Assembly: GCA_009103225.1 (NCBI GenBank)
Contig: RHPI01003079.1
Span: 201,163-265,162 of the forward strand
Source: Chlorokybus atmophyticus
Lineage: Eukaryota > Plantae > Mesostigma and Chlorokybus algae
DNA length: 64,000 nt
Direction of reading: 5' to 3'
Each line of letters begins with the position of its first letter. Within the stretch, counting starts at the first letter, position 1. Under the pieces are notes generated by a model. It saw nothing but the letters and a program-made list of their open reading frames with translations. It did no database searches and was not told where the DNA came from. Below are positions 11,975-60,537 of the stretch, one piece after another. Both the position numbers and the translations under genes were made by a program.

Positions 11975-12019
11975 CAACTGAGCTCTGGAGCTGGAACCTC
12001 CTCAGAAGCTCAGGGGGGG

Positions 12020-12906: not shown

Positions 12907-13352
12907 AATGGGCCTGCAAGGTCCCCCGCGACTCGCTGTGTGTCAGCGTGAGTCGAGCTGGGACGCGGTGGCTGTGGCTTGTCTTGTCCGCTGGGATGTG
13001 CCGGTCATGTGCTCGTTATGTCATTATGCTGCGACGCGGATGTGACGAGCCGGTCGCATTGCGTGTCGGAGCTCTTCGGGGTCGGTCTGCGCTGACATTC
13101 CGTGCCGCTGGCTCTTTGGGAGTGCGACGTGCGGTGACATTCCGCGTTTCGCCGCGCTCGGTTAGCATACTATGTCGCGATGAGTCGGTTAGTGTTCACG
13201 GGGACCGTTGTGAACTAAGCGCCAGATTCAAATCGTTTGAAAACGTTTCGGTTGCTCTCCATGTTGAATGGAGTGTTGTTCGTGGGGGGCGGTGGCGGCG
13301 GTGGCGGCGGCGGCGGCGGCGGCGGCGGGTTCTGGGTTGTGGGTCCAGAGAC

Positions 13353-16318
13353 ATGTCCACGACGCCTAGTGTTTGGTCCAACCGCCCAGAAGTGGGTGGT
13401 TGTGTGTCACCTGATGGCACTCAGCATGACGACCTGCACAGGCAGAGGGGCGATGGTGATGCAGTGGGTGGAGGTGATGAGCGGGAGCAAGAGCATACCT
13501 CGCCGCCGCCAGGGGGGACTGCTCGCAAGCGCAAGGAGCCTGGTGAAAGGGTGGAAAGCGAAAGGGCCGAGGGGAAGAAGAAGTCAGCGAAGTCTGCACG
13601 TGAGAATCAAAAGGCCCAAATCGAGATATTGCGCCGTGACCTCAAGATTGAGGAGGTGCTGGGCGCAGCCAGAGTGTACACTCTAGCTCTCACCAGCGGC
13701 AGGTGCTGGGAGGTGGCGCCGGAGGGTCTGCGTATGCTGCCGGTGAGCAGTCTGGTTGGTAGCATCCATGCGTCAATGTATGGTTGAGACGTTGTGGGGC
13801 TGTGTGCATAAGTGACTGGCCATTGAATGAACGCTGATAGCGTGATGTGGTGGTTAGGGACTGCATCCTGCCAAGTTGGAGGTCTCTGTGTCGGCGGTTG
13901 CGCTGCTGAGCCCTCCTATCGCAGTCGGTGATGGCCGACTCTACCGCCCAACTGCATGCTGCTCGAGGCCCACATGTCAGGGATGTTGCTCATGGTTGGT
14001 GATTTAAACTTAATTCTTGACCCAACGCATGGTGATTGCGGGTAGAGTCAAAGGAGTAGCTGTGCGTGCCTAACTGCGTTGTCGTGTAGTCAGACGCATG
14101 TACGCCAGGCCCCGGTCTTTGATCAGGAGAATCAGTGCTATGTGGACCATGACGGCAACATGTTGCGGCCGACGAGACGCACTTCCAATGTTGGGCTGCA
14201 GCCACCTCGATAGCCCAACATCAACATGTCGCAGTTCGACTTCTGAACGCCGGCGGGCACGATGGGGACAGCCTGGAAGACTTACCCATCTGCGTCGGTG
14301 GGGGGTGCGTCCCTCAACTTTGGATAGTTCATGCGGTTATGTGAGAGCGAACAGAGTCAGAGTAGCCCGTTTGCATGCTGACTTTGGCTTAATCGAGAGA
14401 TGATTGGCAATGCAACAGGGTGGCCATTGCATGACTGCTTGATGCATGTGCGCATTATCTGATGAGGTGTGTCCCGTGTGTTGTAGGGCGTGTTTTAGGA
14501 CGTAGGTCGTGCGGAGGTGTGTGCAAAGCTGCATTGTCTCAGGTTGGTTGCCAGTGTGCATAAGTTCGAAACAGCATTGGGTACTCGGATGTGCGGGAAT
14601 TCTGAGTGTACTGTCCAGTATTGTGTTGTGCTGTGCGTGTGCCTGAGTGTACTGTGCGTGTGCCTGAGTGTACTGTGCATGTGCTGGGGTGTATTGTACT
14701 GTACCATAAGCTATGCTGCTACATATGCTCATGCACAAAAAAATTTAAAGACCGATGTTTTTTGTGCCAGATTCAAGCTGACTTAGCGACGCAAATGGCA
14801 CTGGTTGCTGAGCTGCAAGAGCAGCTGCTGCTGGCGGTGGAGTTGGTCAGTAAACAGTGTGGTCGGGCTGACGCAGCCGAGGAGGAGCTGAGGGTGTTGT
14901 CTGCAGCGAGGACTAAGGAGCGTGCTGAGCGAGCAGGTCATATTCAGCGACTGGAGGCTCGTTCCAGGGATCTGCATGCACAGCGCACGGCTGTGCAGAT
15001 CGGCATAGATGCGGCTGAGGGGAGCATTGTCACGATGTGCTAACAGGTGGAGAAATTAACCCACGAATGTCGCAGCCTACAAGGGAGTCTGGTGTCAGAG
15101 AGGCGCAGCGTTTCGGCATTGCAAGAGCGTGTGTTGGAGCTGGAGTCCTTGTGGGAGAGGTGCGATGCTCGTGCCTCTGAAGCGCAGCGCCTGCGTGCCG
15201 TGGTGGACGTGCAGTATATGGTAGTAGCTGAGGAAGCGCAGCAGTTGCGAGCACGTGCTGAAGTTCTGGAGGCGCGCCTGCGCACCGCTGAAGGCGACAG
15301 CGCTGAACACCAAGCAAATCTCTGGGATAGGCTGCTAGAAACTCAAGACGCCACAGCGCATGCACAGTCGGAGGTAGAGAGGGTTACCGCCCTATTTAGG
15401 GAGGCTGAGAGCGGAGCAGAGCAACTTGGCGAGCTGGTCGATGAGCAGCGGCAGCTGCTCAATGTCAGTCAAGAGTCAGCGCATTAGAGTCACGGGTGCG
15501 GTCATCTGATGCGGCCACAAGTGAGTTGCTGGCGAGGCATACGGCAGACATGCAGCGTGCGTCAGTGGCGAGAGAGCAAGCGCTGGTAGCTCTTTCCAGG
15601 GGGGTGGCCGCTGGTGGAAAAAGACTCCGCGTGCAGCGTGAAGACTTTGGTCAGTTGCTGTCAACAGCGCAGCAGGACCTTCGTGCATCAGTTACGGAGC
15701 TGGAGGCTAAGAGAAAACTGCTGCTGCAGTCACACGAGGCAACGCGTCAGCTGCAAGTGCATGCGCAAGGGTTGGAGGAGGAACTGGCGGAGGGCAAATG
15801 TGCTATGGCAGACCTGCAATTTTGCTGCAGTGATCTGGAGAGCAGGAAGTGTGCCTTGGAGGACGAGTTGGCCACTTGCACAAGGGCGAGGGAGGTCTCA
15901 ATGCGACTGCTGGACGCCGAAGTGTCAGCCAACGCGCAGCTGACGCAGCAGTGCAACGATCTGGATGAGCAGCACAGGTGGAAGGACTCTAAACTTTTGG
16001 AGTGGGGGCAGCGGTGCAGCTGCCTGGAATCTGATATCGAGGAGCTGAAAGAGTGCCTCGCACAACAGGCGCATCATCTTGAGCAGCAGGCTGAAGCATT
16101 GCGCAAGCACACAACCAGCAGCAACTCGGCAGAGCAGCAAGCGCAACGGGGGCAGCACGAGGATCACCTCAGAAGAGTGGCAGCCAGCGCAGGGTCTGGA
16201 CCTGTGCACAAGGCGTTGGTGGCGATAGCCAAGCAGTTGATGTCTCCCGACTGTGTGGTCAACCTCAACGTGATCTGCGAACAGCATGGAGTCAGAGATG
16301 TGCGCCAATTGTACAATG
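13353..16318 (+). pseudogene. Unit 1 gene 1, N-terminal part: basic region + long coiled coil
   Basis: Exon MSTTPS...RKRKE...KKKSAKSARENQKAQIEILRRDL; heptad-rich E/L/Q/A exon at 14770-16318 with two stops. Its end (AIAKQLMSPDCVVNLNVI) aligns with unit 2 (DVASQLLPRGAVVFLTAV). Confidence 0.6.
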
Positions 16319-16743
16319 TGTTGAAGGACTAGCATGCACATGTAGTTGAGACAAGCATAGACACACAGAGACAGAGCTACCGCCACCAGAGCATACACAA
16401 GTCACATCACATTCATCTATTACAAGTTGTCCACTGGTTCTTATACCAGCCAGTTACACACACGTCTACGTTTGCAAGCACTGCGTAAGCTATACTCAGC
16501 CTTTTAACGCGCTCTAAGCTGCGTTGTCTTCCTTACAACCAGAGCTTTCCAACAAGCTCTTACACGTCTAGTATGAGTAAGTATACGTGGAGATACAAAG
16601 CAGTTAGTAAGGCTCCAGTCTGGAGTCCGGAGTCTGGTCCGACGACGCCATCTTGCTAAGTCCGGACCTAGTGCTCGTCCTTACGACCTTCTACTCCGGT
16701 GTGGAGGGTCGATGCTGATTGTATTTAGGAATGACTCTCAACA
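16319..16743 (-). repeat. Copia 3' LTR
   Basis: TGTTGAAGGACTAGC...ACTCTCAACA; 11 differences counted versus 21269-21693 (~97% identity). Confidence 0.97.
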
Positions 16744-16785
16744 CTCCCACGCGAGCAGCTTGACCTCCAACGCTTGCTCCTGTAG

Positions 16786-18260
16786 TCAAACACAGATGCC
16801 AAGTCCTGCGCAACAAGTCTTGAACTTGAGCGGTGACAATGGCTTTGTCATGAAGTCCGCCAGCATGCCCTCAGTGTTGCAGTACTGAAACTCCACCTCC
16901 TTCCCTGTGACTCTGTCACGCACAAAGTGATGCATGACATCAATGTGCTTCGTCCTTGCTGAGGCGATAGGGTGCTTCAACAACTTGATGGCTCCTTGGT
17001 TGTCACAGTTGATGACGATGCACGCCATGGGGTGCTCTAAGTCTGCCATGAGCTTGCGAAGCCAGAGTGCCTCCTTCACTGCTGCTGCCGCTGCCATGTA
17101 CTCAGCCTCTGATGTAGATGCTGCTGTTGTTGGCTGCAGCCTGCTGTTCCAGCTCACCACGCCTCCGTCAGCTTGAAGACGTAGCCTGTATTGGACCTCT
17201 TGCTGTTGAGGTCACCAGCAAAGTCCGAGTCGCAGTAGCCCTCCAACTCAGTGCTCCCGCTCCCAAACTTGATGCCAACTGTTGCGCTCCCAGCAACATA
17301 GCGTAGTACTCCCTTTGCTGCGCTCCAGTGCTCCATGCTCGGTGCAGACATGTAGCGAGCAAGTACTCCCACAGCATGTGCAACATTGGGACGTGTGCAC
17401 ACTGCCAGATAGAGCATGCTGCCTACCAGCTCACCATATGGATACTGAGCCTTGTCGAGTACCTCCTCATCCTTTGCCTTGATGAGGGCAGTGCCAAGTG
17501 CCAACGGTGTGGTCTTGGTCTTCGCTTCAGTGAGCCCGAACTTGGTGACGAGTCTGTTCACTTTCTGCTCCTGACTGATCTTGATTGTGCGTGCAGCCTT
17601 GTCGCGCTCAATCACCATGCCAAGGAACCACTTGGCCTCTCCAAGATCACGAACTGAGAATGCTTGATGTAGAGCAAGTTTCGTCTCCTGCAGGTGGTGC
17701 ACCTGCAGGGCGGTGATGATGATATCATCAACATATACGAGTAGCCAGACCTTGTTGTCTGCATAGATGAAGAGCTCAGGGTCTGCAGAGGACGCGGTGA
17801 GGCCAAGTGCCTCCAGCTCCTTGGTGAGCTTGATGTGCCACATACGCGGTGCCTGTCGCAGCCCGTACAGTGCCTTGATCAGCTTGCACGCTGTGCCTCT
17901 CTCCCCTTCTTCATATCCAGGTGGTTGCTCGATGAAGATCTCCTCCTCCAGCTCTCCGTAGAGGAAGGCAGTCTTCACATCCAGGTGATGCAGCTCTAAG
18001 TCTTCAGCAGCAACCATAGCTAGCAGTGCACGGAAGGTGGTATGCTTACTTGCAGGTGCAAACCCTTCGTTGGAGTCCACACCTTCCTGCTGCAAGAAGC
18101 CCTTTGCCACCAGTCTTGCCTTGTAGCGCTCAACGTTGCCCTGATCATCACGCTTCACCTTGAAGACCCATTTCACTGGAATGGTCTTCATTCCTTACGG
18201 TAACTGCTCCAGTGACCAAGTGTTGTTGGCATGGAGTGACGCAATCTCCTCGTCCATAGC
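16786..18260 (-). pseudogene. Copia reverse transcriptase + RNase H
   Basis: KWVFKVK, RYKARLVAKGF, HLDVKTAFLYG, LYGLRQAPR, LLVYVDDI; frameshifts near 18195 and 17160. Confidence 0.96.
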
Positions 18261-18530
18261 ACGCTGCCATTACTCCGCATCTGGTGCTAACAATGCCTCC
18301 TCGTAGGTGCTTGGCTCCTCATTCTGCACACTGGCAACGAGTGCCTTGTGTAAGAAGTCAGGTGCCTTTCTCTCCCTCACTGGGTATCTCCGAGCTGCGT
18401 GCTTCTGCTGCAGGTGCGGCTCCTTCTGGCCTGCTACAACTGAATCTCGCTCACCCTTGTCATTGATGACTGCCTCGCCCTCAGCCTCCACTGTCTTAGG
18501 ATGCTCCTGTGGCTGTACTTCATCGTCATC

Positions 18531-20456
18531 TCAAGGAAAGAAGCCTGCTTCTGGTTGTGGTAATCCCTCGTGGAAAGCCACCTCTCTGCTCACAATGATC
18601 TTCTGAGTGTCCTCGAGCAAGATCCTGTAAGCCTTGAAACCCGGTTCATAGCCAACGAAGATGCCCTTTTTGTTGACCGGCTCCAGCTTGTGCCTGAGCT
18701 GTTTAGGCACTAGTGCATATGCCGTGCATCCAAGCACACGCATACCACTCACATCTGGTGTGGCTCCATAGAAGTGCTCCCACGGAGTCTTCTGCTCTGA
18801 GCTCACCGGAGACCTGTTGCGGATGTAGTTGGCAGTGAGTACCGCCTCCTTCCACAAACTGTCTTCCATTCTTGTGTCGTTGAGCATGGCTCGAACACGC
18901 TCTAAGAGTGTCCTGTTGAGGCGTTCTGCTGCTCCATTCTGCTGCGGGGTGTAGGGTGCCGTTGTCTCGTGGCGTATGCCCTTGCTGGCGAAGAACTCCT
19001 TCAACTCCTTGTTGATGTACTCCCCTCCTCGATCACTCCTCATTGCCTTCATCTTGTTGCCAAACTGGGTCTCCAACAAGGCCACAACTGTGCGCACAGC
19101 TCTAGCAACTTCTGACTTCAGTGTCAACGGAAAGATGACGGATAGCTTGCTGCAGTCGTCGAGGAATGTAGCAAAGTACCTGACCCCTCCCTTCGCCACA
19201 ATGCGCATAGGGCCACAGACATCCATGTGCACAAGCTCGCAAGGATGCTGACTGCTAGAAGTGTTGAAGGTATTACATGGGTGATGCTTGTATCCGGTCA
19301 GCTTGCCCTTCATACAGGAGTCGAGGGTCGAAGGTACCAGGAAGAAGCGCGTGGACTCCAGACTTAGCAAGACGGTCGAGTCATGACGGACTCCGGACCA
19401 GGCTGCTTGGTAGAGCCTTGGGAGAAATCGCGTAGCTTCGTGGATATGTAAGCTTAGCAAGCGTGGCTTAACTTGTTGGAAAGCTCTGGTTGTGAGCTAG
19501 ACAGCGTAGCTTACAGAACAGCAATCGGCTGAGTATAGCGCACGCGGTGCTTGCCAATGTAGACGTGTGTAGAGACTGGCGGGGTATAAAGCCCAGATTT
19601 GTTGCAATGAAGATAAGAGGTCACGATGTAGCATGTGTGCGGATGCTATGGCAGCAGTAGCAGTCATGCTCTTGTGTTGATGTTGTTGGCGTGTCACTTG
19701 CACGTGTGTATGTCAACAAGAAGAGGATGATGGGAATGGCATAGCATGCTGCTTTGCAACCAGGCATGGTTCACAAAGTGCACCTAATGCATTCTTGAGT
19801 TCTTCTGTGCTGAGATGGATGCCCTTGACCATCTTCTCAGCGACAAGGCGAGTGAGGTTGACGTAGCTGAGATGCCCGAACCTTCGATGCCACAATGTTG
19901 GCGACTCCTTGTCCTTCATCACCATGGCTTGAATGTCAATGTCCTGAGGGTGCTGCTCCACGTGATAGAGCCCTCCCGGATCAGCGATTCCAACCATGTG
20001 CACGACCCCATCAAGGATGACTGTGCAGCCACCCTTCCGAAATAGGATCTCCGCGCCTAAGCGCTCCGCAACCCTCACAGAGAATAGACTCGCAATAGCC
20101 TTAGGGACATGCATAACGTTGCGTAACAACACCTCGCGTAGTGTGTTACCAACCTTGCACTGGAGTCGTACGTTGCCAACTCCCTCGGCCACCAGTACTT
20201 CACCACCAAAGCCCGCCACCTTGATTGTGGACGTCAGCTTCCTGTAGCCCTCCATCACCTCTTGATTTGGTGTGAGATCGCAGCCAGAGTCCACCACCCA
20301 GAAAGCTGTGCCCGCCTTCGAACTGGATGCAGTAAAGGCGACATGTTTCTCCTTGTGTTGGTGCTCGCTGCCGCTGTTGCTGGTGCTTGCTCTACGTTGC
20401 CCCTGTTGTTTCTTCCTACAGTCCTTGACAATGTGCCCCAACCACACCAGTGGCAT
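18531..20456 (-). pseudogene. Copia protease, GAG-pre-integrase and integrase, split by a solo LTR
   Basis: FWVVDSGC, LWHRRFGHLS...CEPCLVAKQ, ELVHMDVCGP, RSDRGGEY, TPQQNGAAERLNRTL. Confidence 0.95.
19262..19718 (+). mobile_element. Solo LTR inserted into the copia integrase region
   Basis: TGTTGAAGGTATTAC...ATGTCAACA with a perfect AGAAG 5-bp TSD. Confidence 0.95.
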
Positions 20457-21139
20457 GTGAGGTCTTTGTGACGAGGATTGCCTGGCTTGTTGCCCTTGTA
20501 CTCCTCTTCATGGTTGCTCTTCTTTGCGTGCTTGCCTGCGTAGAAGGCGACGGCATCCGCTTGCTCGTCCTTCTTCACAACCCTCTGCTCTACGGTGAGC
20601 AGCTTCGGTAGCACATCGTCCAACGTCAACTCCGATGATGACGTCTGCAGCAAGGTTGCGACGACCTCGTGCTCTGCTGGTAGCCCTGCAACAATGGCCA
20701 ACACTACCGCCGTCTCCCCCATGTTGTGGCCGACGTTGATGAGGTCCGCCCACAACGCTCTCGCGCGCGCAGCATACTTTGTGATGGGTTCTGCTGCCTC
20801 CTTCCTGAGTGCGCTCAGCTGCTTGCGTAGCTGCAATTTTCTGGCGTTGTTCTTGGCTTTGAAAACGGCTGATAGCTTTTCCCAAGCTTGTCTACCATCT
20901 TCACATGCAGTGAGCATGGGAAAGTGATGCGGTTTGCTGTTCAACACAAGCAAAGAGTGTGCTTCCGCTGAATGCTCTGACCACACAGTGTTCGCTCCTG
21001 GTGTTGGTGGTGGTGCCTTCGGATCAACGTACTTCCGCACCTTCTTATGGATGAGCAAGGCCTTCATCTCCACGCACCATGTGTTGTAGTTGTCGGTGTC
21101 CAGCTTTGCAATCTGCCCCTTGTCGTAGGTCGCCTCCAT
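20255..21139 (-). pseudogene. Copia gag
   Basis: KLDTDNYNTWCVEMKALL, AWEKLSAVF...RKLQLRKQL; the CCHC knuckle (CHWCG/GHIVKDC) is split by a frameshift. Confidence 0.92.
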
Positions 21140-21256
21140 CTCTGTCGTGCCTGCCTTTTCTTGCAGTTGACACCCAAGGCTCTGCTACTAACAAGCTACC
21201 GTAGTGTAGAACTACTAATGCACACAAGCTAGTCTCACACTCTTCAAGCGTAGTGT

Positions 21257-21268
21257 GGGCCCATAACC
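21257..21268 (-). promoter_or_regulatory. Primer-binding site GGTTATGGGCCC (half-molecule initiator tRNA-Met type)
   Basis: Immediately inside the 5' LTR; matches the internal-tRNAiMet PBS known for Drosophila copia and Volvox Osser. Confidence 0.85.
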
Positions 21269-21693
21269 CGTTGAAGGACTAGCATGCACATGTAGTTGAG
21301 GCAAGCATAGACACACAGAGACAGAGCTACCGCCACCAGAGCATACACAAGTCACATCACATTCATCTATTACAAGTTGTCCGCTGGTTCTTATACCAGC
21401 CAGTTACACACACGTCTACGTTTGCAAGCACTGCGTAAGCTATACTCAGCCTTTTAACGCGCTCTAAGCTGCGTTGTCTTTCTTACAACCAGAGCATTCC
21501 AACAAGCTCTTACACGTCTAGTATGAGTAAGTATACGCGGAGATACAAAGCAGTTAGCAAGGCTCCAGTCTGGAGTCCGGAGTCTGGTCCAACGACGCCA
21601 TCTTGCTAAGTCCGGACCTAGTGCTCGTCCTTACGACCTTCTACTCCTGTGTGGAGGGTCGATGCTGATCGTATGTAGGAATGACTCTCAACA
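21269..21693 (-). repeat. Copia 5' LTR
   Basis: Direct repeat of 16319-16743. Confidence 0.97.
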
Positions 21694-24147
21694 GCGATCA
21701 CGCAGAAAGCCAAGAGTGCAACCCGTGCATACACGAAACGTATGAGGGAAAAGGTTAGTAGTGAGAGTGCCTGCTGATGTGCAAGATATTCATAACGTAA
21801 GCGCTGTACGCAGATTCAGCTGCTCAAAGCTTTGGCAAAGCAAGGAGCCAACGAGTCCGCTTGCACTGCGCAATACTCACCCATACCCTCTGCTCTGTTC
21901 ACCGACGATGGGTTGATGAGAAAGGGCAACAAGTCGGCATTCTTGGCAGCACTTGTGCGTGCAGCTGAAGGTGCTGAGCGCCGCAGCTTCCCCCCTGGCG
22001 GCGAGTGCCTGATCTTGGAGGTGCATGTTCTTGATCAACAAGAACCCTCTCCCTCATGTCGGCACTATACGTGAATATCTGGACCAGTTGCTCAAGACCT
22101 GCATCGTCCCTCGTCTACATAACCCGACACTACAGGCCCTGCATGTTGTCTTTGACGATCCTAAGCATTCCACAGCAGTCAAGGCTGCATTGCAGGCGAC
22201 CCGAGATGCAGGCTGTCAGAGGAGCAGCACAACTCTGGAACTCACCTCAGAAGTGCCAAAGGCATGGCGAAATCTGCTTGCTGATCGCAACCTGAAGCGG
22301 CGGCTATGCCACCTCTTTACTGCAGCCATCCCAGCGATGGCCGTCCCTCACATGCGTGAGGGACAAGAGGTCATCATTGCGGATGGTTCAGACACTGAGC
22401 CATGGGCGCATGCTGCGCGCAGAGTCCGCAGCGTGGATGGAAAGGCAGTCTACGACACTATGGACACATACAGATGCAACCATGCCGAGGCCGACTCAAG
22501 AGTGTGGTACCATGCCAAGACGTGTGAGCAGAAGACACTCCTGATCTACTCACCCGACACGGATGTGTCGATCATAGGGCTGGCAGCTCTCGAGATGTGG
22601 GGCGAGGGTGACAAACAAGTGCATGTGCAGCTCAGCAGCAACGGGAGTGCCTCAACCAGAGCGCCCTTCATCAGCCTCAACGTGGTGTATCGTCACATGC
22701 AGAACATGGCACATGTACGTTACACAGCAAGAAACCAAGTGGCGCTGCAAGTCCTCATATTTTACGCGGTCACCGGGTGTGATTACACCAGCTACACAAG
22801 CGGCATTACCAAATTGTTCTACTGGCAACATGCCATGGGGAGGCAGCCAGAGTTCATATCGCCCGGTGGGCAACTCACTCGAGACAAAATGGTGCCCATG
22901 TTGCTGCGCTTGATTGGGTGCGCCTACTTTCACAAACACAAATCATCCTTCAGTCCCACCACATCTGCATCAGCTCTGTTCTACGACCTGAACGGTACGC
23001 GCGCATGCAAGGATGACACGCCAGCGCTGGAGGCATGGCTCGCCCTCATCAGGAGCAGTGCCTGGCCACACACGTGGGTCAACCTTGAGGACATGGCGTC
23101 TACTCAAGCGCTCACTTACCATTGCCAACGTAGCTTACGTTGGCAATGGTACGCCTGTGGGTTGTCGACATGTGGCTTCAGTGTTGCAGATCAGAAATGC
23201 AGCTGCCCAACCTTGCAGACAACGGTTTTGACGTGGTAGACGGCGTTGCTCACGCCATCATGGACACCGCTGAGAACATGGCCGCTGCCAAGAGTCGCAC
23301 CAACCAGCTGCTGCACGGATGCAGCTGCAAGAAGAATCAGTGCACCACCAAGATATGCAAATGCCGCAAGGAAGGCCAGCGCTGTTGCAGCAGGTGCTCA
23401 TGCATAGGATGCACCAATTCAGCGGGCGGTCAGCCCACTCAAACACAACATCATGGTGCAGCACAGACGGGCGCAGATGCACACAACAATCAGGCAGACG
23501 ACCCTAGGTATGACTTACCAGCCAGCTCTGAATCTGACGACAGCGATGACGATGCCGACTGTAGTAACTCGGAGGATGATCTGACGGATGCATGTTGAAG
23601 GTATTACATGGGTGATGCTTGTATCCGGTCAGCTTGCCCTTCATACAGGAGTCGAGGGTCGAAGGTACCAGGAAGAAGCGCGTGGACTTCAGACTTAGCA
23701 AGACGGTCGAGTCATGACGGAGCAGGCTGCTTGGTAGATCCTTGGGAGAAATCGCGTAGCTTCGTGGATACGTAAGCTTAGCAGGCGTGGCTTAGCTTGT
23801 TGGAAAGCTCTGGTTGTGAGCTAGACAGCGTGGCTTACAGAACAGCAATCGGCTGAGTATAGCGCACGCGGTGCTTGCCAATGTAGACGTGTGTAGAGAC
23901 TGGAGGGGTATAAAGCCCAGACTTGTTGCAATGAAGATGAGAGGTCACGATGTAGCATGTGTGCGGATGCTATGGCGGCAGTAGTAGTCATGCTCTTGTG
24001 TTAATGTTGTTGGCGTGTCGCTTGCACGTGTGTATGTCAACAATGCATGCTCTGACAAGGAAGGCGATGAGGCCAACATTGTGGACGACAACAATATGGC
24101 TGATTGGTTGGACATAATCGAAGACTTGACTGTTCCTGAGGAGTAAA
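21694..24147 (+). pseudogene. Unit 1 gene 1, C-terminal part: XPG/FEN1-like nuclease + Cys-rich CXC-like finger + acidic tail
   Basis: LHVVFDDP, CNHAEADSRVWYHA, IYSPDTDVSIIG, AVTGCDYTS; HGCSCKKNQCTTKICKCRKEGQRCCSRCSCIGCTN. The tail continues past the solo LTR to TAA at 24145-24147. Confidence 0.85.
23593..24042 (+). mobile_element. Solo LTR, same family as 19262-19718
   Basis: Near-identical to 19262-19718; perfect ATGCA 5-bp TSD. Confidence 0.95.
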
Positions 24148-24413
24148 GCCATGAACAGCCCATGCCACGACTGCATGCGTCACCTGCTGGCATTCAAGCA
24201 CTGGCGCCCTCTTACTCCAGTCCGCCGCCGCCTTCGCCGCCGCCGCCCCTACCGCCGCCTGCAGCTGACATCTCGGACTATCAGAATGCACAAGTCCGGG
24301 AAGTGTAGTGTCAACCCGCGCATTATTAGGGTTGCGCTCGTAAAGTTAGGGCGGCGATAGGCCGCTGGTGCTCTTCTCTGTGTGTGCTCGGCTGGCATTA
24401 TTTACTGCATGCA

Positions 24414-26219
24414 ATGGCAGGTGGTGCACAGCCACGGCGCGCATCGGTCTGCGAAGTATGCAGGTCTTTCGTGGTGAACAACGGCCAGCGTGCACGTCTG
24501 GAGCAACATCAGAGGCAATGCAGCCAGTATGAGGTGATGTTCAGCTTCATCGCCTCATGCTGGCATCACCATTGTCAGGGGATGCATGTGCTTGAGTGCC
24601 GTGGCAAGCACAAGTGCACCTTGCCCAAGTTCTTCCAGCCTCAGTGCTTTTGCCCTGCATGCGCACGCTCTCCATTTGAGTGGCATGGGCTGCCCATGCG
24701 GTACATGCCGTATGCCTACCCGGGCACCATTGCAAATGGCCAAGCTTTCACGCTACTCAACGTAAGTGCAGCGCGTGCCATGCTGCATGATTGCACAGTC
24801 AAGGTTGGAGCTGTTGCATGAATGCACAGCCCTACACTCTCTCACGTGCGGCGTCGCAGAGGCAGCTTGCGCGTTGCGGACGCGGCCGAGTTGACGGCAC
24901 AGATGCGTTTGCGCTGGAGACAGACACCCAGCACACACTCACAGTGGAGGTCAGTGTGCGTGCTTGCAACCTGCTGTGCTGTGTACTGCTCAGCGTGTAT
25001 TGCATAGCACACACTCACAGCGCGCACTGAGAGCATGGTTGCCCTAGCAGAGCGTGCGCGTCAACTGCGTGCAAGACGCGTACAGACGGCGTTGCAGCAC
25101 AGGTGGGTCTGCACTAGTGGGCTGCGACGTCCAAGTGTACTGGCCTGCCGACAAGGCTTGGTATCCAGGACACATATACAAGTACAATACTACACAAGGT
25201 GATTCAAAACACCACACTATTTACCCTATGACCAGCCCGGGTGGAGGGTCTAACTTGTGCATGCTCACGCACACAGGACGTCACAGCGTGCGCTTCGTAG
25301 ATGGCGATACCCAGCATCTCCAGATCGACAAGCACAACGTTGTCGTCTGCCTCAGCTCACAAGGACATCACTATTGCATTCGTGTCGGCGGTTGCAGAGT
25401 CCCTACCACCCGGAAGGCCATACCTCCTTTGCCTTGTCTCCCACATTGGTCAGGAGCCCCCCCTATGCTCTTGACACACACGCCGCAACTCCCCAACGGG
25501 GCGCCGCATCGCCCCAAGTTGCTGGACTTGTTCTGCGGAGGGGGAGGCGCCAGCATGGGCTTGTACCGCGCCGGCTTTGACGTCACTGGTGTGGATATAC
25601 ATGCCCAGCCAGAATACCCCTTCCACTTAATCCATGCCGAGCGCTGACAGTCGACCTGGTTGAGTACGATGTGATCTGGGCAAGTCCCCCCTGCAAAGCC
25701 TTTGCGCGCTGCATACCCGACACACAACGGCGCAAGCACTCTGACAAATGGCAGCACAGCACGGTGCTACATGACATCAGACAGAAGTTACACGAGTCCG
25801 GCAAGCATTACATCTTGGAGAACATCCCCGACGCGTCCATACACATGCGTGCCGACATGGTCCTGTGCGGCACTATGTTCTCGCTCTCTACATTTCAACA
25901 CAGAGTGTTCGAGTCCAGCCCGCCTTTGTCTGTTGACAAGGTTTGTGACCATGCATTACACAGTCTGGATGCGTTGTCTTGACACCGCACTGCACACACC
26001 AACGCGCAGCAGCCCCTACAGCACCAGATGTATCCGATCTATGGGCAAGCGGCTTCACGCGGGACTGTAGCAGGGTGGCAGAAAGCGATGGGCATCGATT
26101 GGATCCATGCAGAGTCTACTCTGGTAGAGTGCATACCCCCGGCCTACTCTGAGTACATAGGCCGCCAGATGTTGAAGGCGCTAGGGTACACTCTGCACGA
26201 TTCATCTCTGTCGTGGTGA
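24414..26219 (+). pseudogene. Unit 1 cargo gene: Cys/His module + Tudor-like domain + bacterial/phage-type C5 DNA methyltransferase
   Basis: In-frame GT-AG exons ~24414-24761, 24830-24949, 25051-25198 and 25277-26219. Tudor VQVYWPADKAWYPGHIYKYN-GRHSVRFVDGD. MTase LLDLFCGGGGASMG (25519), VTGVDI, IWASPPCKAF (25671), YILENI, VLCGTMF, ECIPPAYSEYIG. One 1-bp frameshift (~25640) and one stop (25980). Confidence 0.88.
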
Positions 26220-27365: not shown

Positions 27366-27785
27366 ACCCAGTCAGAAAGCCAGAGGCCTTCCCTATGGCA
27401 GATTGCAGGAAATGGTTGGTCGAGATGGATGCTCGCGTCGTATGTAGGCCATGAGTAACGTGTGAGCATGGGTGAACTGGGGTAATCGACAGCCGTGGTC
27501 TCTGTAAGTTTATCGTTGATTGTCGGCGGTGTTGGTAAGGTGAACAGCGTAAGTTAACGACCGTTTATGAGCGGTGTTGCATCAACGATCGACTGTGTGC
27601 GTTGTTGGTTGTCGTTTGCGGTCGCCGTTGCTCACGGCAAAGTATATCACTGTCGTCGATGCGGAGGCGCCGGTGTACCCTGATATCAGCTTATGCCAAC
27701 GGTGGTAGTATTCGAATTTGCAAGTGCAGATGAGGCGGGGTGTTTGCAGTGTTGGCTGGGCTGTGTGTTGTGGGCGGTGGCGTCG

Positions 27786-30700
27786 ATGGCGGATGATGCT
27801 AGTCTAGCGTCGCTTTTTGAGGAGCAACGACAGAAGCTCGAGTTGATAGAGGCGGCGAGGAAGGGTCGCAATACAAGCCAGCGTGACTATGCCAGGCGTC
27901 GCCGTGAGGAAGATAAGAATTACATTCAGCAGCTGAAGGAAGAGTGTGGGCTGGTAAAGTCTTGGATGCACGCAACTGGCGTGTTTCTGCATGCATTGAC
28001 ATGTGGGAAGACTTGGAGATGGCAAGGAGATAACCTTGTTTTGGTTCAGGTGCGTGTGGAGGGTGCTTCGTGTGTTCATGCGTGTGTATTGTGTGTATCG
28101 TGCATTGTCTCCACCTGTGACTGCGGTTTGATATGGCAGCTGATATGGACGAGAAGTGTTATGTGCTCGACATACTGACTTTGATGTATTGTGTGAGCAG
28201 GATACCTTGCCGACGCTTGGTGGTGCACCTCTTGGACTATGTGCGCAGGTGAGGTGCGGTTGCATGCTGCATGCTGCGTAGCACTGTAGTTGGCTGCAAA
28301 CCCGTGCTCAATGGTGCATGTTGCAGGAGAATGATGTTGAATTGGCTCTGTCGTCGTCCGATGAGGAGGAAGATCAGGAGAACATCCATCAAGTACTTTC
28401 GCAGCGTAAGAAGCAGAAGCAGCATCATACGCCTCATCAGCAGCAAGTGCCACCAGCCTCTGCACTGCACCAGACACCGCATGGCAATGTGCGCCATGAT
28501 TTGAATGGCAACCGTGTCGTGTTGGGACCGGCCATGTCTCGGTTGAACACAGCGAGAGGCGTACCTAAAACGCCCAAGACACCACTTGGCACCTTGCCAG
28601 GTGGGCGCTTAGCTTAGCCTGATTTGCTTTGCTAGGCGGTACCCTGAAAGACTATGAATCATGTGTAGTAGATGAGACGATGTTGTATACCTATTGCCTA
28701 AATGTGGATTTGAGAACTAGTTTCCACAGCTTGATGCATGTGTGTTGTGTGCCGACCAGGTTCGTCGTGCCAGCGTGCATGCGGATGATGCGTACAGGCA
28801 GACCCGTGTGTTCAGCCAGCTGGAGGTATAATGGGAGTGGGGGGCACGCAAACAAGTAAACATGCTGTGTAGTTGATCCTTCAATGCACAGTCATCTTGT
28901 CAGCAGCTTGTGCTAGGTTCGATGTATTGGCGTTCGATGTAGAAAATGGGGATGTGGTCTGTAAATTTGCCAGGTATCCATACTCAAGTCACCATGTGGA
29001 ATGGCAGAGTGGTATGAACGGGTGTCATTATAGTCTACATCACTATGTATGTAAGCACTTTTTCAACGAGTCGGCAGATTGCGAAATAGGGGACTACAGC
29101 CATATGATAATATATGCTCTGAGCGCCCAACCACTGTGTCTATGCAGTCAGCGACTTTACAAGTTCAGAGTTTGAGGGCAGAGATGGCTTCAGTCAAGCA
29201 GGGGAGAGATCGTGTACAACGCGACTTGGATGCGGCGCTGGAGAGGCTGCGTGTCATGGAATCAAGCGGCAGCTCCAACACCAACAATGCCTTGCAGAAT
29301 GCCTTGCTGGAGGTTCTGCAGTTGCGCACACAATGCGAGGTTGGTGTTGCCTAATCCTGTTTGTATGATGTATGTGGTGTATGTTTGGGTTTGACTTACC
29401 TCTGGCTTGCATGGTGTAGAACTTGCGAGATCAGCTCACACGGAATGTATGTCAAGATGACCAACGTCGCGCAGAGTCTGCACGGGCTGTTGGGGAACTG
29501 GAAGAGGAGTTGGATGCAATGACCCTGCATGCCGAGGTGAGTGGGTGCACAACCTTGCATGCAATATTATATTGACTATCAGAGGCCTCTATGTCCAGAA
29601 GTCGAACATATCACCAGGTGTTAGAGACCAGGGTGGGCGAGGAAGCGGACGCTTATAACGCTGAGAGGAGACACTGGCTGCAGGTGGAGTGCAATCTGTC
29701 AGGATACCGTGGCAAGTTAGTGGAGCTGGAGGACGTGATCGCTAGTCTACGTGAGACTGTGCGCACAAACAGGGCGTGCCATCCATCGCAGCACGATGCA
29801 CGTGTGGCGGACGAGGTGCGCCAGCTCTATGAGGACGATGTGCAGCGAGCAGCCAATGAGGACTGTCACGAATCTTTGGCATGCGCGGTGAGAGATGTTG
29901 CCTCCCAGTTGCTGCCGAGGGGTGCCGTTGTATTCCTGACTGCAGTAGCAGTCAAGTACAATATTACACCTGCGCGTGTACTGCTGCGTGCTGTGAACCA
30001 GCGCTTACCGGGAGCGGGTGTGGTAGTGACCGGCGCCAGGCAACAGGGTACACTAATGATTGCTGCTTGGGCCGATCCTTTGGCATGCCTGTTGCGCCAT
30101 GGGATGAGGGTTACTGAGGTGCCTGCCAGCACACAGCCAACTCGTACGGGTACCAGCGCGGTTGATGGCGACCAACTGCCTGCTGCTGTACTTCGTCACC
30201 TGAACAGGGTTATGGAGGCGGAGAGGCAACGGCATGTCGAGCGCAACAGACAGGAGCCTGATCTGCGCTGCGTGAATTGGCAAGAGGAGTGGGAGAAATA
30301 ATGAAATGAAATGAAATGAAATGCGGACCTGTAGTGCGACAGTTGTTTGGCACACTGACTGGCTACAGTCAGATGGAGCGATTGCCATCTCCTGGTCCCG
30401 AACGGGCTCGTGCTTTAACAATCCTGCGCAATAAGACCGTGTTCCTGATGCACTGTGCATTGTATGCAAGGAGCAAGTTTGCATACTCTCTATTGCATCT
30501 GGCGGTCACGGACGAGGTGGACACACATTCTGAAGGGAACAAGTTAATCAGGACCCTCAACCGCCTGGGTGTGACAGTAAGCCGAAGCCACATCGATCGA
30601 CACATACACACCAGGGCGCTTCACAATATGAACAGCATCGCTCGATTGCAGCCCCGACGTGGTATACATGTGCTGGCATCGATTGATAATCTAAACATAA

Positions 30701-33700
30701 AGGCAGGCCACCAGGCACGCTACAAAGGCAGGAAAGCAGGAGACATCCATGCCACTTCAACTCAGCTTACCTCGACAGCCGCTCGGATGCCTCCAGAACA
30801 GCTGACTCTCGCAGGTGAGTTGTCAGCCCATGGTGATCAGGGAGACCAATTACTGCGAGTACAGGTCAGTCAAACCCGCATCTTGTGGGCAATCCATGTA
30901 CTCATTGTTGGTGTTGTTGCAGCCATCGAGGAATCGCATGCTGGCAGAGTCACTGGTGGCTGAGCCGTGCGTCTACAATATGCCTCCTCCTGCGCCCATG
31001 CAGAGAGCACCAATTGTTGTGCGGAGTGACCCAATCTTGAATTTAATGCCTGAAGAGGTTGCGGCACTGGAGAGTTCCAGAAATTGTTACACAATGCCGT
31101 GTTGATGCGCATGCAAGAGCCGGACCAAACAAGTTTGCCAACACTCAAGGAGGATTGGGCACGGTGGCTGCAACTGGCCACAGGCAGAAGCACTGAAGTT
31201 GCCAACGACATTGAATACCTGCTTGTGTTGCCTTTCTGCCCTGACAATATAGAGAACCTCAAGTTTGCGCTCTTGCAACTGCGCGCCAAGGTTGGCATCA
31301 CGGATTCAACAAGCAAGATCTATGTTACTAGGAACCTGAAGACGTTTGCCCTGATGCAAGCACTAAAAAAGGCAGAGCCGGGCTACTGGGACTGGGTGGT
31401 GCCTTTCCCTGGCGATTTCCATGTCCTGATGAACATGCAGCCCGTTATTATGAAGATGGCCTGGGACGCTGGTCTCGATGCTATGTCCTTGGAAGCCGGT
31501 TTTTCTGCAGCCATGGCACGCAATCATTTAGCAGACGGCTCTCATTGGAAGAAGATACACAATTTTCTGTGTAAAGTCTTGGAGGCACTGTACAGACATA
31601 TGTTCAAGTTGTGGCAGCAGGCAGAAACCGCAGAAATCAAGAACTTGTGCAGAGCTGACCTGGAGGAGAACGGGATCAATGCCCCAAAGTCTGCTTCCTT
31701 CTTCCGCGAATGGTGCGAGGGTCAGTGCAAGACCGATCGTACCTGGCAGTTCTGGTGGAACTTCGTGAGCCGTGATATGCTGCATTACTTTCGGCTATTT
31801 TGTGGTGTTTCCCAGAAGATCTGGCATCTCCGACTGGCCAGCTGGAAGGGTCTGAGCCCGCTTCCATTCGCCTGGGATCGCTACCATTATTAGAAAGTCA
31901 TGACGCTGCATCTTGCAGACCTGCAGAGCATGCCGCGCTCTTTGCTGGATATGCTAGCCGAAGGTGGCTTTGCAGTCAGTCTAACAGGATCGGCTGGCAG
32001 ACTGGTTGCTCTCGATGAAGCCCATGAGTGCCAGGTCAACAGAGATATGAAGATGTCACTGTGCAGGCCCACCACCGAGCAGCTCTGTCAGAAGTCATTG
32101 TACTTGGGGGAGCGCAGTCAAGCACACAAGCAACTAAAGCGTCAGCTACTGCTTGACAACAACCTGGTCAGCAACGAGCTGGATGATGACGCCGACGATG
32201 ACCACGAGAGGGTAATGCGGACATTGGCTACCGACGCCGCCAGGTGTGGCAGCGATCTAACGCATCTTGTTGAGCTGCTGGAGGATACACAAGCCTTGGC
32301 AAGGCCACACGCGCTGCTCTTGACGCATCTTACCACCGGGATACCAGCGGCGGCTGCTGCTTCAGCAGATCTTGCGCAACACTACCAGGTTGGTGTTGAG
32401 GCCATGAAGTCGTTTGTGGAGGTTGACGTCTGCCGCGAGGCACCTGCGTGCAAAGTCAGTCGCAGATTCAACTTGAAAACAATGGCACCTGCTAAGAAGC
32501 GCATGAGCAAACAGGCCACCGTGATCAAGCAGTACCGTCAAGAGATGTTGGTGGCCAAGCGCCTGGCTGCCAATGGTGCTAGTCAGGAGACCGTCACAGC
32601 AAGATACTGCGAGCATCCACGGGCGCTGTTTGAGGAGCTCACCGGCAAGATGCGGTCTAGCGACAAGGCCAAGTTGATGGCGCAGGTAGCTCCTCTCGAC
32701 AACACATGCTGGAGCCGCATGTCCCCGCAGGGCGTGGAGTGCATCATCCTGGAAGGCATGTTCCTGATTAATCAAGAATGCCACATGCTGCAAGGCACCA
32801 TCAAGGACTATATCCAACACCTGATGCGCACCTGCGTGCTCAGCCGGCTCGCCAATCAGACCGTGCGCAGCGTGCAAGTTGTGTTTGACACTCCACGACT
32901 CCAAACGGGGGTCAAGTCTTCACTGCAATGCGCACGTGACGGTGCGGCGCAATCCTCTGGTGGTCGTCTAACTCTGGACACTTAGCTGCCGAGATTGTGG
33001 CGGGATGTGCTAAGAGATCGTAGCTTGAAGCGATCGCTGTGTGAACTGATAACAGAGCACATGCCCAACATGATTGCGGAGTACCTGCACCCCGACCAAG
33101 AGGTTGTATTCGCTGGCGGTTCAGATATAGACGAAGTTGGAGACCTTGCGCGTGTCGTGGCACGCGATTCGGACAGCCCTGCACGCGTATATTTTGTAAA
33201 CGACTATGTTTGTAACCATGGAGAAGCTGACTCTCGCGTCTGGGTGCATGCGCACAAATGCCCCTACAACAACATCCTCATATACTCACCTGACCGATGT
33301 GACCATGATTGGCCTGGCGATCCCCGACGGGTGGGATGCAGTGTTGAAGGACGTCACAGTACAGGTGGCACATCACTCCAGTGGCTCCACTCGACCACCC
33401 TTCCTGCACTTGTCTACACTGGAACAACAAGTCAACAGCATGCACCAGGTGCAGAGCATCGCCACCGGGTTGCGTGGCTGGTGGCTTCTTCTGGTGTATG
33501 CAGAAACTGGTTGCGACTACACCTCATTCATTGGCGGCATCTCGAAACAGTTCATCTGGCGCAAGGTCCTGGCACAGCATGCAACATTCATCACCGGCAA
33601 TGTTAGTGTAGTGGAACATGAGATGTGTTTCGCTATACTGCGCCTCATTGGGTGCTCTTACTTCGAGAAGTACAGGTCCAGCTTCCACAGCGGCACTCTT

Positions 33701-34312
33701 GCATCTCTGTACTTCGAGTTGCACGGGCCTGAATCAACCACCAGCGATAAGGGACGATTGGCAGACTGGTTAGAGGCGATCCACAAAACAGTGTGGAAGA
33801 AGATTGCCACGCCACGAGATACCATGCCCACAGTCGATGCACTATGGCTGCATGCACTTCGCTCGGTGTATGCAGTGCAGATGTGGATGCAGAGCTGCAA
33901 TGGTGACATGCACATGCCTGACTTGTCTGATTATGGTTTCACTGAGGTCGATGGGTTATGGACTGCTGTCAAAAATCTGCCAGAAAACATGGTGGAGGCG
34001 AAAGCTAGGAGGCAATTGCTGATGAAGGGTTGTGGATGCAAGACTAAACAATGTATCAGCAAGAGATGCAAGTGTCGCAAGGCAGGACAAGCATGCACCG
34101 ACAGCTGTTCGTGTTTGGGATGTGACAACCACGGCAATCACGTGGACGAGGACGCTAGTGCAGCTCCTAGTTGCCACACAACACCCCCCCCGCCCGTGGT
34201 CAACCCAACAGCCAAACAGTCAACACAGGCAATGGACAACGATTATCCAGATTCTGTCAACTCAGACAGTGATGAGGAAGACCTCACCATGATGGATATG
34301 GACGACGTCTAG
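27786..34312 (+). pseudogene. Unit 2 gene 1: coiled coil + Academ-like DDE transposase + XPG/FEN1-like nuclease + Cys-rich finger
   Basis: Multi-exon coiled-coil N-terminus. Transposase motifs LASIDNL (30685), VTRNLKT (31333), PFPGDFHVLMN, WHLRLASWKGLSPLPFAWDRYHY, ALDEAHECQVNRDMK (32026). Nuclease motifs VVFDTP, CNHGEADSRVW, ETGCDYTS. Cys finger GCGCKTKQCISKRCKCRKAGQACTDSCSCLGCDN. Stops and frameshifts present. Confidence 0.82.
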
Positions 34313-34710
34313 GGCGGCCTGCTACTCTCGCAGAAGGCGACGCGAGCAGCAAGTTCTACCATAGCCACGCCCCACTGCACCTCACCCGACCCGCCCAACC
34401 TTCGGCAACCCAATGTACTGCACCTGTCAACGCCGCCGCCACCGGCAGCATCCTCTTCCGCAACCTCCTCCGCAACCGCCGCCGCCTCCGCCGGATGCCC
34501 AAACCGCAGACACACAACCACATCAACATAAGGTGCCGGCACCGCCGCCGCCACCGGCAGCTTGCTCCCCCGCCTCTGCCTACACCGCCGCCCCCGCCAG
34601 CCTCGAGAAGAAATCTGTGCTGGCTGGTATGTAGCAAGCGCATTTTTTTAGGGTTTGCAACGCGTGTTTCTAGGGTAGTGCAGCTCAGCAACATGTGTGT
34701 TACATTGCAA

Positions 34711-36401
34711 GGCGGCGGAGTTGGCGGAGTGCGGTGGCACCAACACGGAGACGGCGGGCACGGTCAAGAAGGTCATGGTTTGTGACGTGTGCCATTCCTA
34801 CGTCGTCAACAACGGTCAGCGTTCGCGCCTTCAGAAACATCAGGCTCAGTGCAAGGCGTACCAGGAGCGCTTTGAATACACTGCCGCATGCTGGCATCAC
34901 CACGCTGCAGGTCATCACATCCTGCACTGCCGAGTGAAGCTTAGGTGTGCGCAACCAGTGTTTTTTAATATGCAATGCGCATGCCATCAGTGCGAAAGCT
35001 CTCTGTTTGAATGGCACGGCCTACCCATGCGATACATGCCTTACGTCCGCCCCACCACCATGATCGAAGGGATGCAATGCCGCCTGCTGGCGGTGAGTGG
35101 CACAGATGGCACTGATAATACTGCACGCATTTGTGCCAACACTAATACTGTATATACAACTTGTGCGCCAGGGCCAGCGCGCGTGCGCTGCGGACGCGGT
35201 GACGCGGTGACCGTTGTCATGCTGCCAGAGATAACGGCTGTTGCATCAGAATTCCTCGAGGTTGGTGTTTCAACGTGAACGTGCATCACACCTAGTGCAT
35301 TACACAACAGCATTGTAATTGTGGACAACCAGACTGAACGAGAAGGAACCGATGCCGCCAGCGTGCTGCGCAAGCGTTGCGCGCGCGGGGATGATGCATT
35401 GGAGGGCCTCGATGTACTGGTGTACTGGCCGATGGACGAGACTTGGTATACCGGAGTCGTCTACATTTACAACCCACGCAATGGTGAGTTATCACGGTCA
35501 AGAGCATTCACACGTGACACCGGCCATGGACTCAACGTAGCGCACTGCAATTGCAGGGCGCCACAGTGTGCGCTTTGTCGACGGCGACAAGCAGCATATG
35601 AAAATCGACAAGCACAACATGGTGGTTGTGTTCTGGCACCAAGGAGCTCAGTGTTGCCACCGCGTTGGTGGTCAGCGCGTACCCACTCACCGCAAGATCC
35701 CTCCGCCTCTGCCGTGTCTCCCGCTGTGGTCGTCATCAGCGCCATTGCTCAACGTTACCGGCGTTGACATCAATCCACAGCCCGAGTACCCGTTCCCCTT
35801 CATACAAGCTGATGCCCTGGTAGTCGACCTGGCGCCATACGACCTGATTTGGGCTAGCCCCCCTTGCCAGGCATATGCCCGATGCATACCAGATTCACAA
35901 CGTCACCAGCATTCCACACGGTGGAAGCACAGCACACTGCTGCCATCGCTGCGATTGCGCCTTCATGAGTCAGGGAAGAACTACATCCTGGAGAACATAC
36001 CAGATGCTGCATGTCACATGCAGCACAACATGGTGCTGTGCGGCACCATGTTTGGACTGCCAACCTTCCGGCACAGGCTTTTTGAGACACATCCCAAGAT
36101 GGTAGCCGACCTGGTGTGCGACCATACGTCCAAGAGTCTAGGTCCACTGTCGGGTCATGTGTCCAGCACTGCCAGCCGCACACTGAACAGCACTACCCAG
36201 CAGATGTACCCCGTGTATGGCTCCGCTGCATCGCGCGGTACCATATCCGGCTGGCAGCAAGCATTAGGCATTGACTGGATTGATGCTGATGCCACACTCG
36301 TCGAATGCATTCCGCCTGCATACTCTGAGTATATTGGGCGGTGCATGTTGCAGGCAATGGGATACACATTGAACAGCGGCCCCATATCATGGGGCCGCTG
36401 A
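34711..36401 (+). pseudogene. Unit 2 cargo gene: Cys/His module + Tudor-like domain + C5 DNA methyltransferase lacking motif I
   Basis: Same exon layout and same intron position inside Tudor (NG|RHSVRF, 35482/35556). VTGVDINPQPEYPF, IWASPPCQAY, YILENI and ECIPPAYSEYIG are open, but the FxGxGG segment is missing. Confidence 0.88.
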
Positions 36402-40357: not shown

Positions 40358-40600
40358 GTGGCTTGTTGATTGTGTGCTCTACATCACAGCACGTACACTG
40401 CAGAGGACACCGCCTCTACATGTCCGTGTGACTCAGCGACAGCGGAGCATTCACACACCAAGCACTCATCGCCGTACAAGCTGGGTTATCTTTTACTTTT
40501 GCTACATGTTATAACATGTTGCAGCGACAGGGCTAGCAAGCATGTCTCTTCCTGCAGCGGCCCGAGACAGTGTGACCCTCGACTCTCCTCGACCCGACAG
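40358..40600 (+). repeat. Truncated gypsy LTR fragment related to 12019-12256
   Basis: Direct repeat GTGGCTTGTTGA...CTCCTCGACCCGACAG with scattered substitutions. Confidence 0.85.
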
Positions 40601-60536: not shown

Positions 60537-60537
60537 G

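Follow-up and report, generated by a model that had tools for sequence, protein, structure and literature searches.

The 64,000-nt stretch of the genome of the streptophyte alga Chlorokybus atmophyticus analyzed here (contig RHPI01003079.1, positions 201,163 to 265,162; hereafter the window) probably contains two old, decayed copies of a single two-gene module, termed units 1 and 2, each made up of an Academ-like nuclease/CXC gene followed by a spliced Cys/His-Tudor-C5 DNA methyltransferase gene. The gene family is real and unusual, as is the pairing of a transposon nuclease with a Tudor-methyltransferase gene. The upstream gene is predicted to encode an XPG-type nuclease with a CXC domain and would belong to an Academ-like DNA transposon, and the product of the downstream gene would combine a putative zinc-binding Cys/His module with a Tudor domain of the RDM15/PDS5C type and a C5 methyltransferase of likely phage/giant-virus ancestry. 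The architecture, introns and family placement of the latter gene, the lesions in its two copies and the long purifying selection on it are documented below, and coordinates are collected in Table 1.

Gene architecture and decay of the two copies

The same three-exon model was obtained for both units, in agreement with an earlier prediction from the sequence alone (the original prediction) that each contains a spliced Cys/His-Tudor-methyltransferase gene, and in both the Cys/His module precedes the Tudor domain, which in turn precedes a short C5 DNA methyltransferase. Splice-site inspection found GT-AG ends on all four introns (two per unit), which are matched between the units in position and phase. 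Intron 1 (unit 1, 24762-25047; unit 2, 35093-35332) is in phase 0 and follows the equivalent codon in both. The second intron, which had been predicted to interrupt the Tudor domain at the same place in both units, does so in phase 1, splitting an equivalent Gly codon (25199-25276, 78 nt, in unit 1; 35484-35556, 73 nt, in unit 2). Three-frame reading together with splice-site inspection gives a conceptual product of ∼480 aa for unit 1, broken at two places, and the spliced open reading frame (ORF) of unit 2 is open over 437 aa and lacks motif I. Methyltransferase motifs had been listed for both units, and this holds for PPC and ENI but not for FCGGGG, which is present in unit 1 only and deleted in unit 2.

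The Cys/His module is kept between units 1 and 2, and its CWHHH...C..C cluster terminates in FEWHGLPMRYMPY in unit 1. No homolog of the module was detected among 5.8 billion proteins, within the allowed length range, and no Pfam family apart from a weak LUC7 zinc-finger stretch; its language-model neighbours are likewise weak. A BED-like reading of the first finger was considered and not adopted.

Neither window copy is able to encode an active enzyme. The frameshift in unit 1 falls where unit 2 and all of the relatives have an uninterrupted frame (around 25639-25640). In the same copy PPCQ has become PPCK and the RHRLFE of unit 2 is represented by QHRVFE, which alters two sites (PPCQ and RHR) whose conservation across 230 relatives is at least 90%. 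Unit 1 is thus a pseudogene, carrying a frameshift, a stop codon and two invariant-site changes. The 108 nt missing from unit 2 correspond to 25471-25578 of unit 1 and include the part encoding the S-adenosylmethionine (SAM)-binding motif I. Because both copies are defective there is no working writer of DNA methylation at this locus, and on this point the original prediction is not supported. The value of the locus lies in comparison alone, as evidence of how old the family is, how long it has been under purifying selection and how well its introns are conserved, and it offers no candidate for functional tests.

Translated self-comparison (tblastx) resolves two collinear units, at ∼21910-26219 and ∼32644-36401, with between-unit amino acid identities of 40-48% for the nuclease/CXC ORF and, by block, 55-73% for the Tudor-methyltransferase gene. 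The two conceptual Cys/His-Tudor-methyltransferase proteins are 60% identical overall, which agrees with the divergence noted in the original prediction. At the DNA level the methyltransferase part alone can be aligned between the units (∼68% identity), the non-coding parts being unalignable. The proportion of synonymous differences (pS) is 0.77, which is saturated, that of nonsynonymous differences (pN) is 0.27, and the dN/dS of the Tudor domain is ∼0.09. Units 1 and 2 are old paralogs and not recent transposon copies; since pS is saturated and pN low, their lineages must have been diverging for a long time as working genes and acquired their lesions late.

No RNA run was found to contain the stretch. 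A closer relative of unit 1 was recovered from the only public run that does contain it (X1), which has the character of genomic DNA from the same strain sequenced at low coverage and is, for that reason, uninformative on expression. Several contigs from this run show 0-1 differences to the stretch, one of them spanning the donor site of exon 1 unspliced. Other contigs are 96-97% identical to unit 1 and differ from it exactly at its lesions: a T is inserted after 25640, restoring the Asp codon, AAA is replaced by CAG at 25695-25697, restoring PPCQ, and TGA is replaced by GGA at 25980. One paralog contig is without a base at 25734, at a depth of 4, which may be an error or a further lesion. These paralog contigs include the nuclease gene, one with 6 differences covering 22964-23228, and on this sequence evidence a younger sister copy of the whole of unit 1 is present elsewhere in the genome.

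Table 1. Positions of the two units, their domains and lesions, and adjacent retrotransposon sequences in the window.
Feature	Position	Strand	Details
Unit 1 zinc finger (Cys/His)-Tudor-methyltransferase pseudogene	24414..26219	+	exons 24414-24761, 25048-25198, 25277-26219
Unit 1 exon 1, Cys/His-rich module	24414..24761	+	C-x2-C...H-x3-C finger, then CWHHH...C..C cluster
Unit 1 Tudor domain	25114..25350	+	split by 78-nt phase-1 intron
Unit 1 C5 methyltransferase domain	25513..26219	+	motifs I, IV (PPC) and VI (ENI) present
Unit 1 frameshift	25639..25640 (approx.)	+	1-nt deletion inside conserved ...IHA-D-AL... stretch
Unit 1 in-frame TGA	25980..25982	+	Gly in unit 2 and in paralog
Unit 2 zinc finger (Cys/His)-Tudor-methyltransferase gene	34775..36401	+	exons 34775-35092, 35333-35483, 35557-36401
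Unit 2 Tudor domain	35399..35630	+	split by 73-nt phase-1 intron
Unit 2 deletion junction	35750..35751	+	108-nt in-frame loss; 36 residues including FCGGGG and flanks
Unit 1 upstream gene remnant	21826..23598	+	XPG/FEN-type 5' nuclease and Tesmin/TSO1 CXC domain
Unit 2 upstream transposase-like gene	30316..34312	+	DUF6589 segment, XPG-type nuclease, CXC domain
Ty1/copia long terminal repeat (LTR) retrotransposon	16320..21693	-	RVT_2, rve; LTRs 16320-16743 and 21270-21693, 98% alike
Copia fragment	23593..24043		95% identical to 19262-19719; between unit 1 nuclease and methyltransferase genes

Affinities of the methyltransferase and Tudor domains

The methyltransferase was assigned to a family through PHROGs and its homologs instead of through Pfam, with Pfam and NCBIfam giving generic SAM-methyltransferase matches at motif I only on the methyltransferase pieces. 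The PHROGs profile phrog_363 ('DNA methyltransferase') was matched by both units (E 1.2e-10 for the unit 1 piece and 1.8e-13 for unit 2), and a word-index search collected 1141 relatives, mostly of 200-230 aa and ∼40% identity, many of them with PF00145. Relatives were found by tblastn in 323 phage records, mainly of Mycobacterium, Streptomyces, Gordonia, Arthrobacter, and Paenibacillus phages, and 319 IMG/VR contigs encode further ones at 33-44% identity. Motif IV is ASPPC and motif VI ENI in both units, and the layout of phage and actinobacterial orphan C5 enzymes that had been proposed for the gene is well supported by the profile match and by more than 1000 short relatives. A phmmer search of the long ORF of unit 2 against solved structures gave no match.

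The nearest relatives, the proteins P0001, P0122, P0125, and P0002, are 45-49% identical to the algal gene product and have a post-PPC insert and a C-terminal tail in common with it, and most of them carry a methyl-CpG-binding domain (MBD; PF01429, E 2e-6 to 3e-8) inserted between motifs VIII and IX. Maximum-likelihood analysis of 74 proteins pairs the two units with a support of 100 and places them within the clade of P0001, P0002, P0122, P0125, and P0170 (Shimodaira-Hasegawa-like approximate likelihood ratio test, SH-aLRT, 93). The tree is unrooted, and transfer may have gone either to the alga or away from it. The 29-kb contig of P0122 encodes topoisomerase II, the ribonucleotide reductase small subunit, an aquaporin and many dense, intron-less orphan ORFs, and the 245-kb contig of a neighbouring clade (P0137) encodes PolB, SNF2, and an intein-containing RNA polymerase Rpb1. 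Pfam searches of additional ORFs on these giant-virus-like contigs detected no capsid gene, and L004 is for this reason termed giant-virus-like and not a giant virus. We read these associations as suggesting that the phage-type enzyme also circulates in giant-virus-like elements. The phage-type origin advanced in the original prediction accordingly stands for the family as a whole but needs to be amended for the algal gene, whose closest relatives are proteins with an MBD, including one from a giant-virus-like contig, and not the actinophage enzymes directly.

The MBD-bearing relatives (located at L001 2028-3050, L003 447-1616, and L004 10001-10843) merit mention in their own right, as a phage-type C5 methyltransferase with an MBD set into its target-recognition region could constitute a self-reinforcing reader-writer.

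For the Tudor domain, the best match among solved structures is the same for both units, 7DE9 (HMMER, E 8.6e-5 and 6.9e-4, over the N-terminal half), which is the Tudor domain of Arabidopsis RDM15 bound to histone H3 monomethylated at lysine 4 (H3K4me1; PMC8184781). In RDM15 the aromatic cage is formed by W616, Y623, and Y641, with D643 and D645 holding the monomethyl-ammonium group and E647 holding H3R2 (PMC8184781). The equivalents of W616 and Y623 are W and Y in both units in the HMMER alignment, and the spliced F-V-D-G-D-x-Q sets Phe opposite Y641, Asp opposite both D643 and D645, and Gln opposite E647 (register counted from Y641, chain residue 46). The Tudor domain had originally been compared to those of plant PDS5 and MSH6, and the top match and the retention of cage and Asp residues argue, at the level of sequence, for that type. 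Other searches were less specific: Pfam returned weak Tudor_KDM3B matches only (E 0.002-0.004), the language-model neighbours are all of the Tudor/Agenet/MBT/Spin class (0.81-0.86), and a representative-library search contained no protein aligning to the Tudor part of the query.

The companion nuclease gene and competing explanations

Homologous nuclease/CXC ORFs, identified by tblastx, precede the methyltransferase gene in both units, so that the arrangement put forward in the original prediction is found in each. In unit 1 the gene is truncated on its 5' side beside a copia LTR, with no upstream part before 16320. In unit 2 the long upstream frame (30316-33606) has five in-frame stops and then one frame change. 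The conserved nuclease motifs (NAEE.DTR, SPDTD, and GCDY..G.GK) recall the acidic and H3TH-like motifs of the Rad2/XPG family, and an AlphaFold2 model of the nuclease, with a predicted local distance difference test score (pLDDT) of 77, matches EXO1, XRN1, T5 exonuclease, XPG, GEN1, and FEN1 with Z scores of 8.6-11.1, against values of no more than 5.8 for unrelated folds. EXO1 scores highest (Z 11.1); for XPG, Z is 9.2 with a root-mean-square deviation of 3.3 over 204 residues. The homologs of this nuclease are unannotated, multi-copy proteins on large eukaryotic contigs, with up to 41 members per 90% cluster.

Taken together with the modelled fold, the upstream gene fits an Academ-like element of the XPG type, to which it may belong. 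Academ (AcademX) transposons, reportedly described by Kapitonov and Jurka in 2010 and by Kojima in 2020, are said to possess a large transposase-like gene, part of which encodes an XPG-type nuclease, and we know of no CXC domain or methyltransferase cargo gene in the described Academ elements. That the units belong to an Academ-like transposon, as originally predicted, is favoured by the XPG-nuclease gene and by a DUF6589 match, but the terminal inverted repeats (TIRs) and target site duplications (TSDs) of such an element were not found. There is no Academ profile in Pfam (PMC5751038).

Several observations weigh against the interpretation of the units as transposon-borne copies of a Tudor-methyltransferase module. 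The presumed DDE core consists of a single borderline DUF6589 match (E 1.6e-6, 27.6 bits vs a cutoff of 27), and a search for element ends around both units revealed no TIRs or TSDs enclosing the genes, which may simply reflect the loss of ends from such old and decayed copies. One perfect inverted match of 21 bp (27369-27389 vs 38357-38377) brackets unit 2 over ∼11 kb and is without clear terminal character or TSD, the other matches from the end search being of low complexity. The units have the same orientation and a distance of 10.3 kb between them, an arrangement that also fits an old tandem duplication. On the side of the downstream gene, PF00145 gives no match on the window's own methyltransferase pieces, the C-terminal half of the Tudor domain alone gives no match to solved structures, and a single-sequence AlphaFold2 model of 25090-25395, with the retained intron included, reached a pLDDT of 46.7 and is unusable.

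The adjacency and common orientation of the units, together with the missing TIRs and TSDs, are equally what a host gene pair would leave behind if a nuclease/CXC gene and a Tudor-methyltransferase gene that were never transposon cargo had undergone an old tandem duplication and were now decaying in a repeat-rich region. Saturated synonymous sites under strong purifying selection, as in long-lived cellular genes, point in the same direction. Such a history is nevertheless unlikely, as the existence of 96-97% identical paralog contigs for both genes implies recent copying of the unit 1 lineage, the nuclease homologs are multi-copy and unannotated in many eukaryotic genomes, and a DUF6589 segment is located in the long upstream frame of unit 2. 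The enzyme itself raises a different question, namely whether the family acts on DNA in vivo at all or comprises RNA 5-methylcytosine enzymes or non-catalytic chromatin binders, with the motif-I-less forms perhaps being regulatory in the manner of DNMT3L. The target-recognition region is very short, and unit 2 has retained an open 437-aa frame without motif I next to a transposase frame with five stops; at the lesion rate of that neighbour, however, a lesion-free 1.3-kb frame is not improbable (about 1 in 4 by our own estimate), and the invariant motifs of the phage family (PPCQ, ENV/ENI, RHR.FE, and IPPAY) are kept in the family, which makes this alternative rather improbable. Little probability attaches to the possibility that the locus is what remains of a giant virus, or of a virus-associated element, that once integrated here, in which case the methyltransferase would be a viral gene decaying after integration. 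It would account for the nearest methyltransferase relatives being in the MBD-bearing clade, with one on a giant-virus-like contig, and for the second related clade on the contig with Rpb1, PolB, and SNF2. Against this, each copy is interrupted by two spliceosomal introns whose positions are conserved, the gene includes a fused Tudor domain of streptophyte type, no viral hallmark gene was seen nearby (the large ORFs belonging to copia, a gypsy-type DNA methyltransferase (DNMT) and the nuclease/transposase-like gene) and the tree, being unrooted, is compatible with transfer in either direction.

The reading as two decayed copies of an Academ-like two-gene module is therefore preferred, and for intact members of the family we infer histone-mark reading, DNA methylation activity and movement as transposon cargo. 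In such members the most likely role of the Tudor domain would be to bind methylated H3 tails (H3K4me1-like), with the methyltransferase placing 5-methylcytosine (5mC) on nearby DNA, so that a histone mark would be coupled to DNA methylation for the benefit of the element. A more far-reaching proposal, possible but on present evidence doubtful, is that intact members serve as functional cargo in cut-and-paste transposons belonging to one superfamily or more, in which a host-derived Tudor domain would read a mark of active chromatin (of the H3K4me1 type) and an enzyme acquired from phage via giant viruses would write 5mC, allowing the transposon to set or mimic the host epigenetic state in its own surroundings; the motif-I-less forms might in that case be non-catalytic partners.

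Both units are located in a repeat-rich part of the window (12-41 kb). The copia element directly upstream of the unit 1 remainder is an unrelated insertion on the opposite strand, and the nuclease/transposase-like gene beside the methyltransferase gene contains no reverse transcriptase. The depth of the copia fragment at 23593-24043 in run X1 is 100-340, vs 3-6 elsewhere, and the copia family is hence highly repeated in the genome. A 297-aa ORF at 6976-7866 (minus strand) matches PF00145 (E 3.4e-12) and represents a gypsy-type DNMT, such that two unrelated kinds of element-borne DNMT occur within one window. Direct repeats of ∼240 bp (12019-12256 and 40358-40600, 88-90% identical) flank the 28-kb block that includes both units; they are probably an unrelated small repeat, although they may alternatively be the borders of a larger structure. 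Coiled-coil-like ORFs upstream of both units (13000-16332 and 29591-30301, plus strand) belong to no Pfam family and have no detectable mutual similarity. A long GA/GCGA microsatellite at 60496-61100 contains an assembly gap (122 N).

Precedents and comparison with known systems

No published description of this Tudor-methyltransferase gene was found in a literature search. Retrotransposons, and a single transposon residing in a giant virus, are already known to carry DNA methyltransferases of their own. The suggestion that DNMT capture is not known for Academ-like DNA transposons can be retained insofar as no description of this gene was found, but it is qualified by partial precedents in Mariner-1_OLpv (PMC3627910) and, for the domain combination, in the Tudor domains of DNMT5b (PMC9998398). 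If the proposed interpretation is correct, the family would represent a new reader-writer design, in which a plant-type histone reader is combined with a phage/giant-virus-type methyltransferase in an early-branching streptophyte alga, and would offer a traceable gene route from phage to giant virus to eukaryote. It could further reveal the ways in which transposons disturb host chromatin marking or put it to their own use, and might provide a compact natural enzyme with possible targeting by H3K4me1.

DNMTs have been described in retrotransposons of Symbiodinium and of the charophyte Klebsormidium (de Mendoza et al., 2018; PMC5890265). As is proposed for the alga studied here, these are cases of a eukaryotic mobile element, including one in a streptophyte alga, with a cytosine methyltransferase of its own; however, they are retrotransposons whose DNMT falls within the eukaryotic DNMT families, whereas the gene described above stands by itself, is spliced, joins a Tudor domain to a methyltransferase of phage/giant-virus type and is located beside a DNA-transposon nuclease gene. 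The gypsy-type DNMT of the window is of the former, retrotransposon-borne kind. Mariner-1_OLpv, which resides in a giant virus as a DNA transposon and codes for an endonuclease as well as a C5 methyltransferase (Bao and Jurka, 2013; PMC3627910), resembles the proposed module in being a cut-and-paste DNA transposon with a C5 methyltransferase as an extra ORF in a virus-associated setting. It differs in that its genes form a restriction-modification-like pair in a viral genome, with no chromatin reader, no introns and a transposase of another superfamily. A Tudor reader and a cytosine methyltransferase in a single polypeptide are also known from microeukaryote DNMT5b, the N-terminal part of which bears Tudor domains or MBDs (Hoguin et al., 2023; PMC9998398), although this is an unrelated, large SNF2-coupled cellular DNMT lineage with no transposon link.

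Among the relatives of the individual parts, the phage orphan C5 methyltransferases (phrog_363; Gordonia, Mycobacterium, Streptomyces, and Rhodococcus phages) have the same compact core, 33-44% identical over ∼200 residues, and the same order of motifs (FCGxGG, VTGVDI, ASPPCQ, ENV, LCG, RHRxFE, and IPPAY). These are stand-alone, intron-less proteins of ∼200-230 aa, in contrast to the algal gene with its two introns and N-terminal Cys/His and Tudor modules, and the post-PPC insert and C-terminal tail (GYT.....) of the latter are common only to the MBD-bearing clade and not to the phage enzymes. The MBD-bearing methyltransferases in turn lack both the Tudor and the Cys/His module and occur in intron-less gene arrays, on contigs of metagenomic origin that are in part giant-virus-like. 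The cage residues of the Arabidopsis RDM15/PDS5C Tudor domain (W, Y, and an aromatic) and its two Asp residues are kept in the algal Tudor domains, with Y641 replaced by Phe and E647 by Gln; RDM15 is a cohesin-associated factor of RNA-directed DNA methylation without an enzyme fusion, whereas the algal Tudor domain, as predicted from its gene, is fused to a methyltransferase. The algal module is like the Academ (AcademX) elements in having an XPG-type nuclease in a large transposase-like gene that is multi-copy in eukaryotes.

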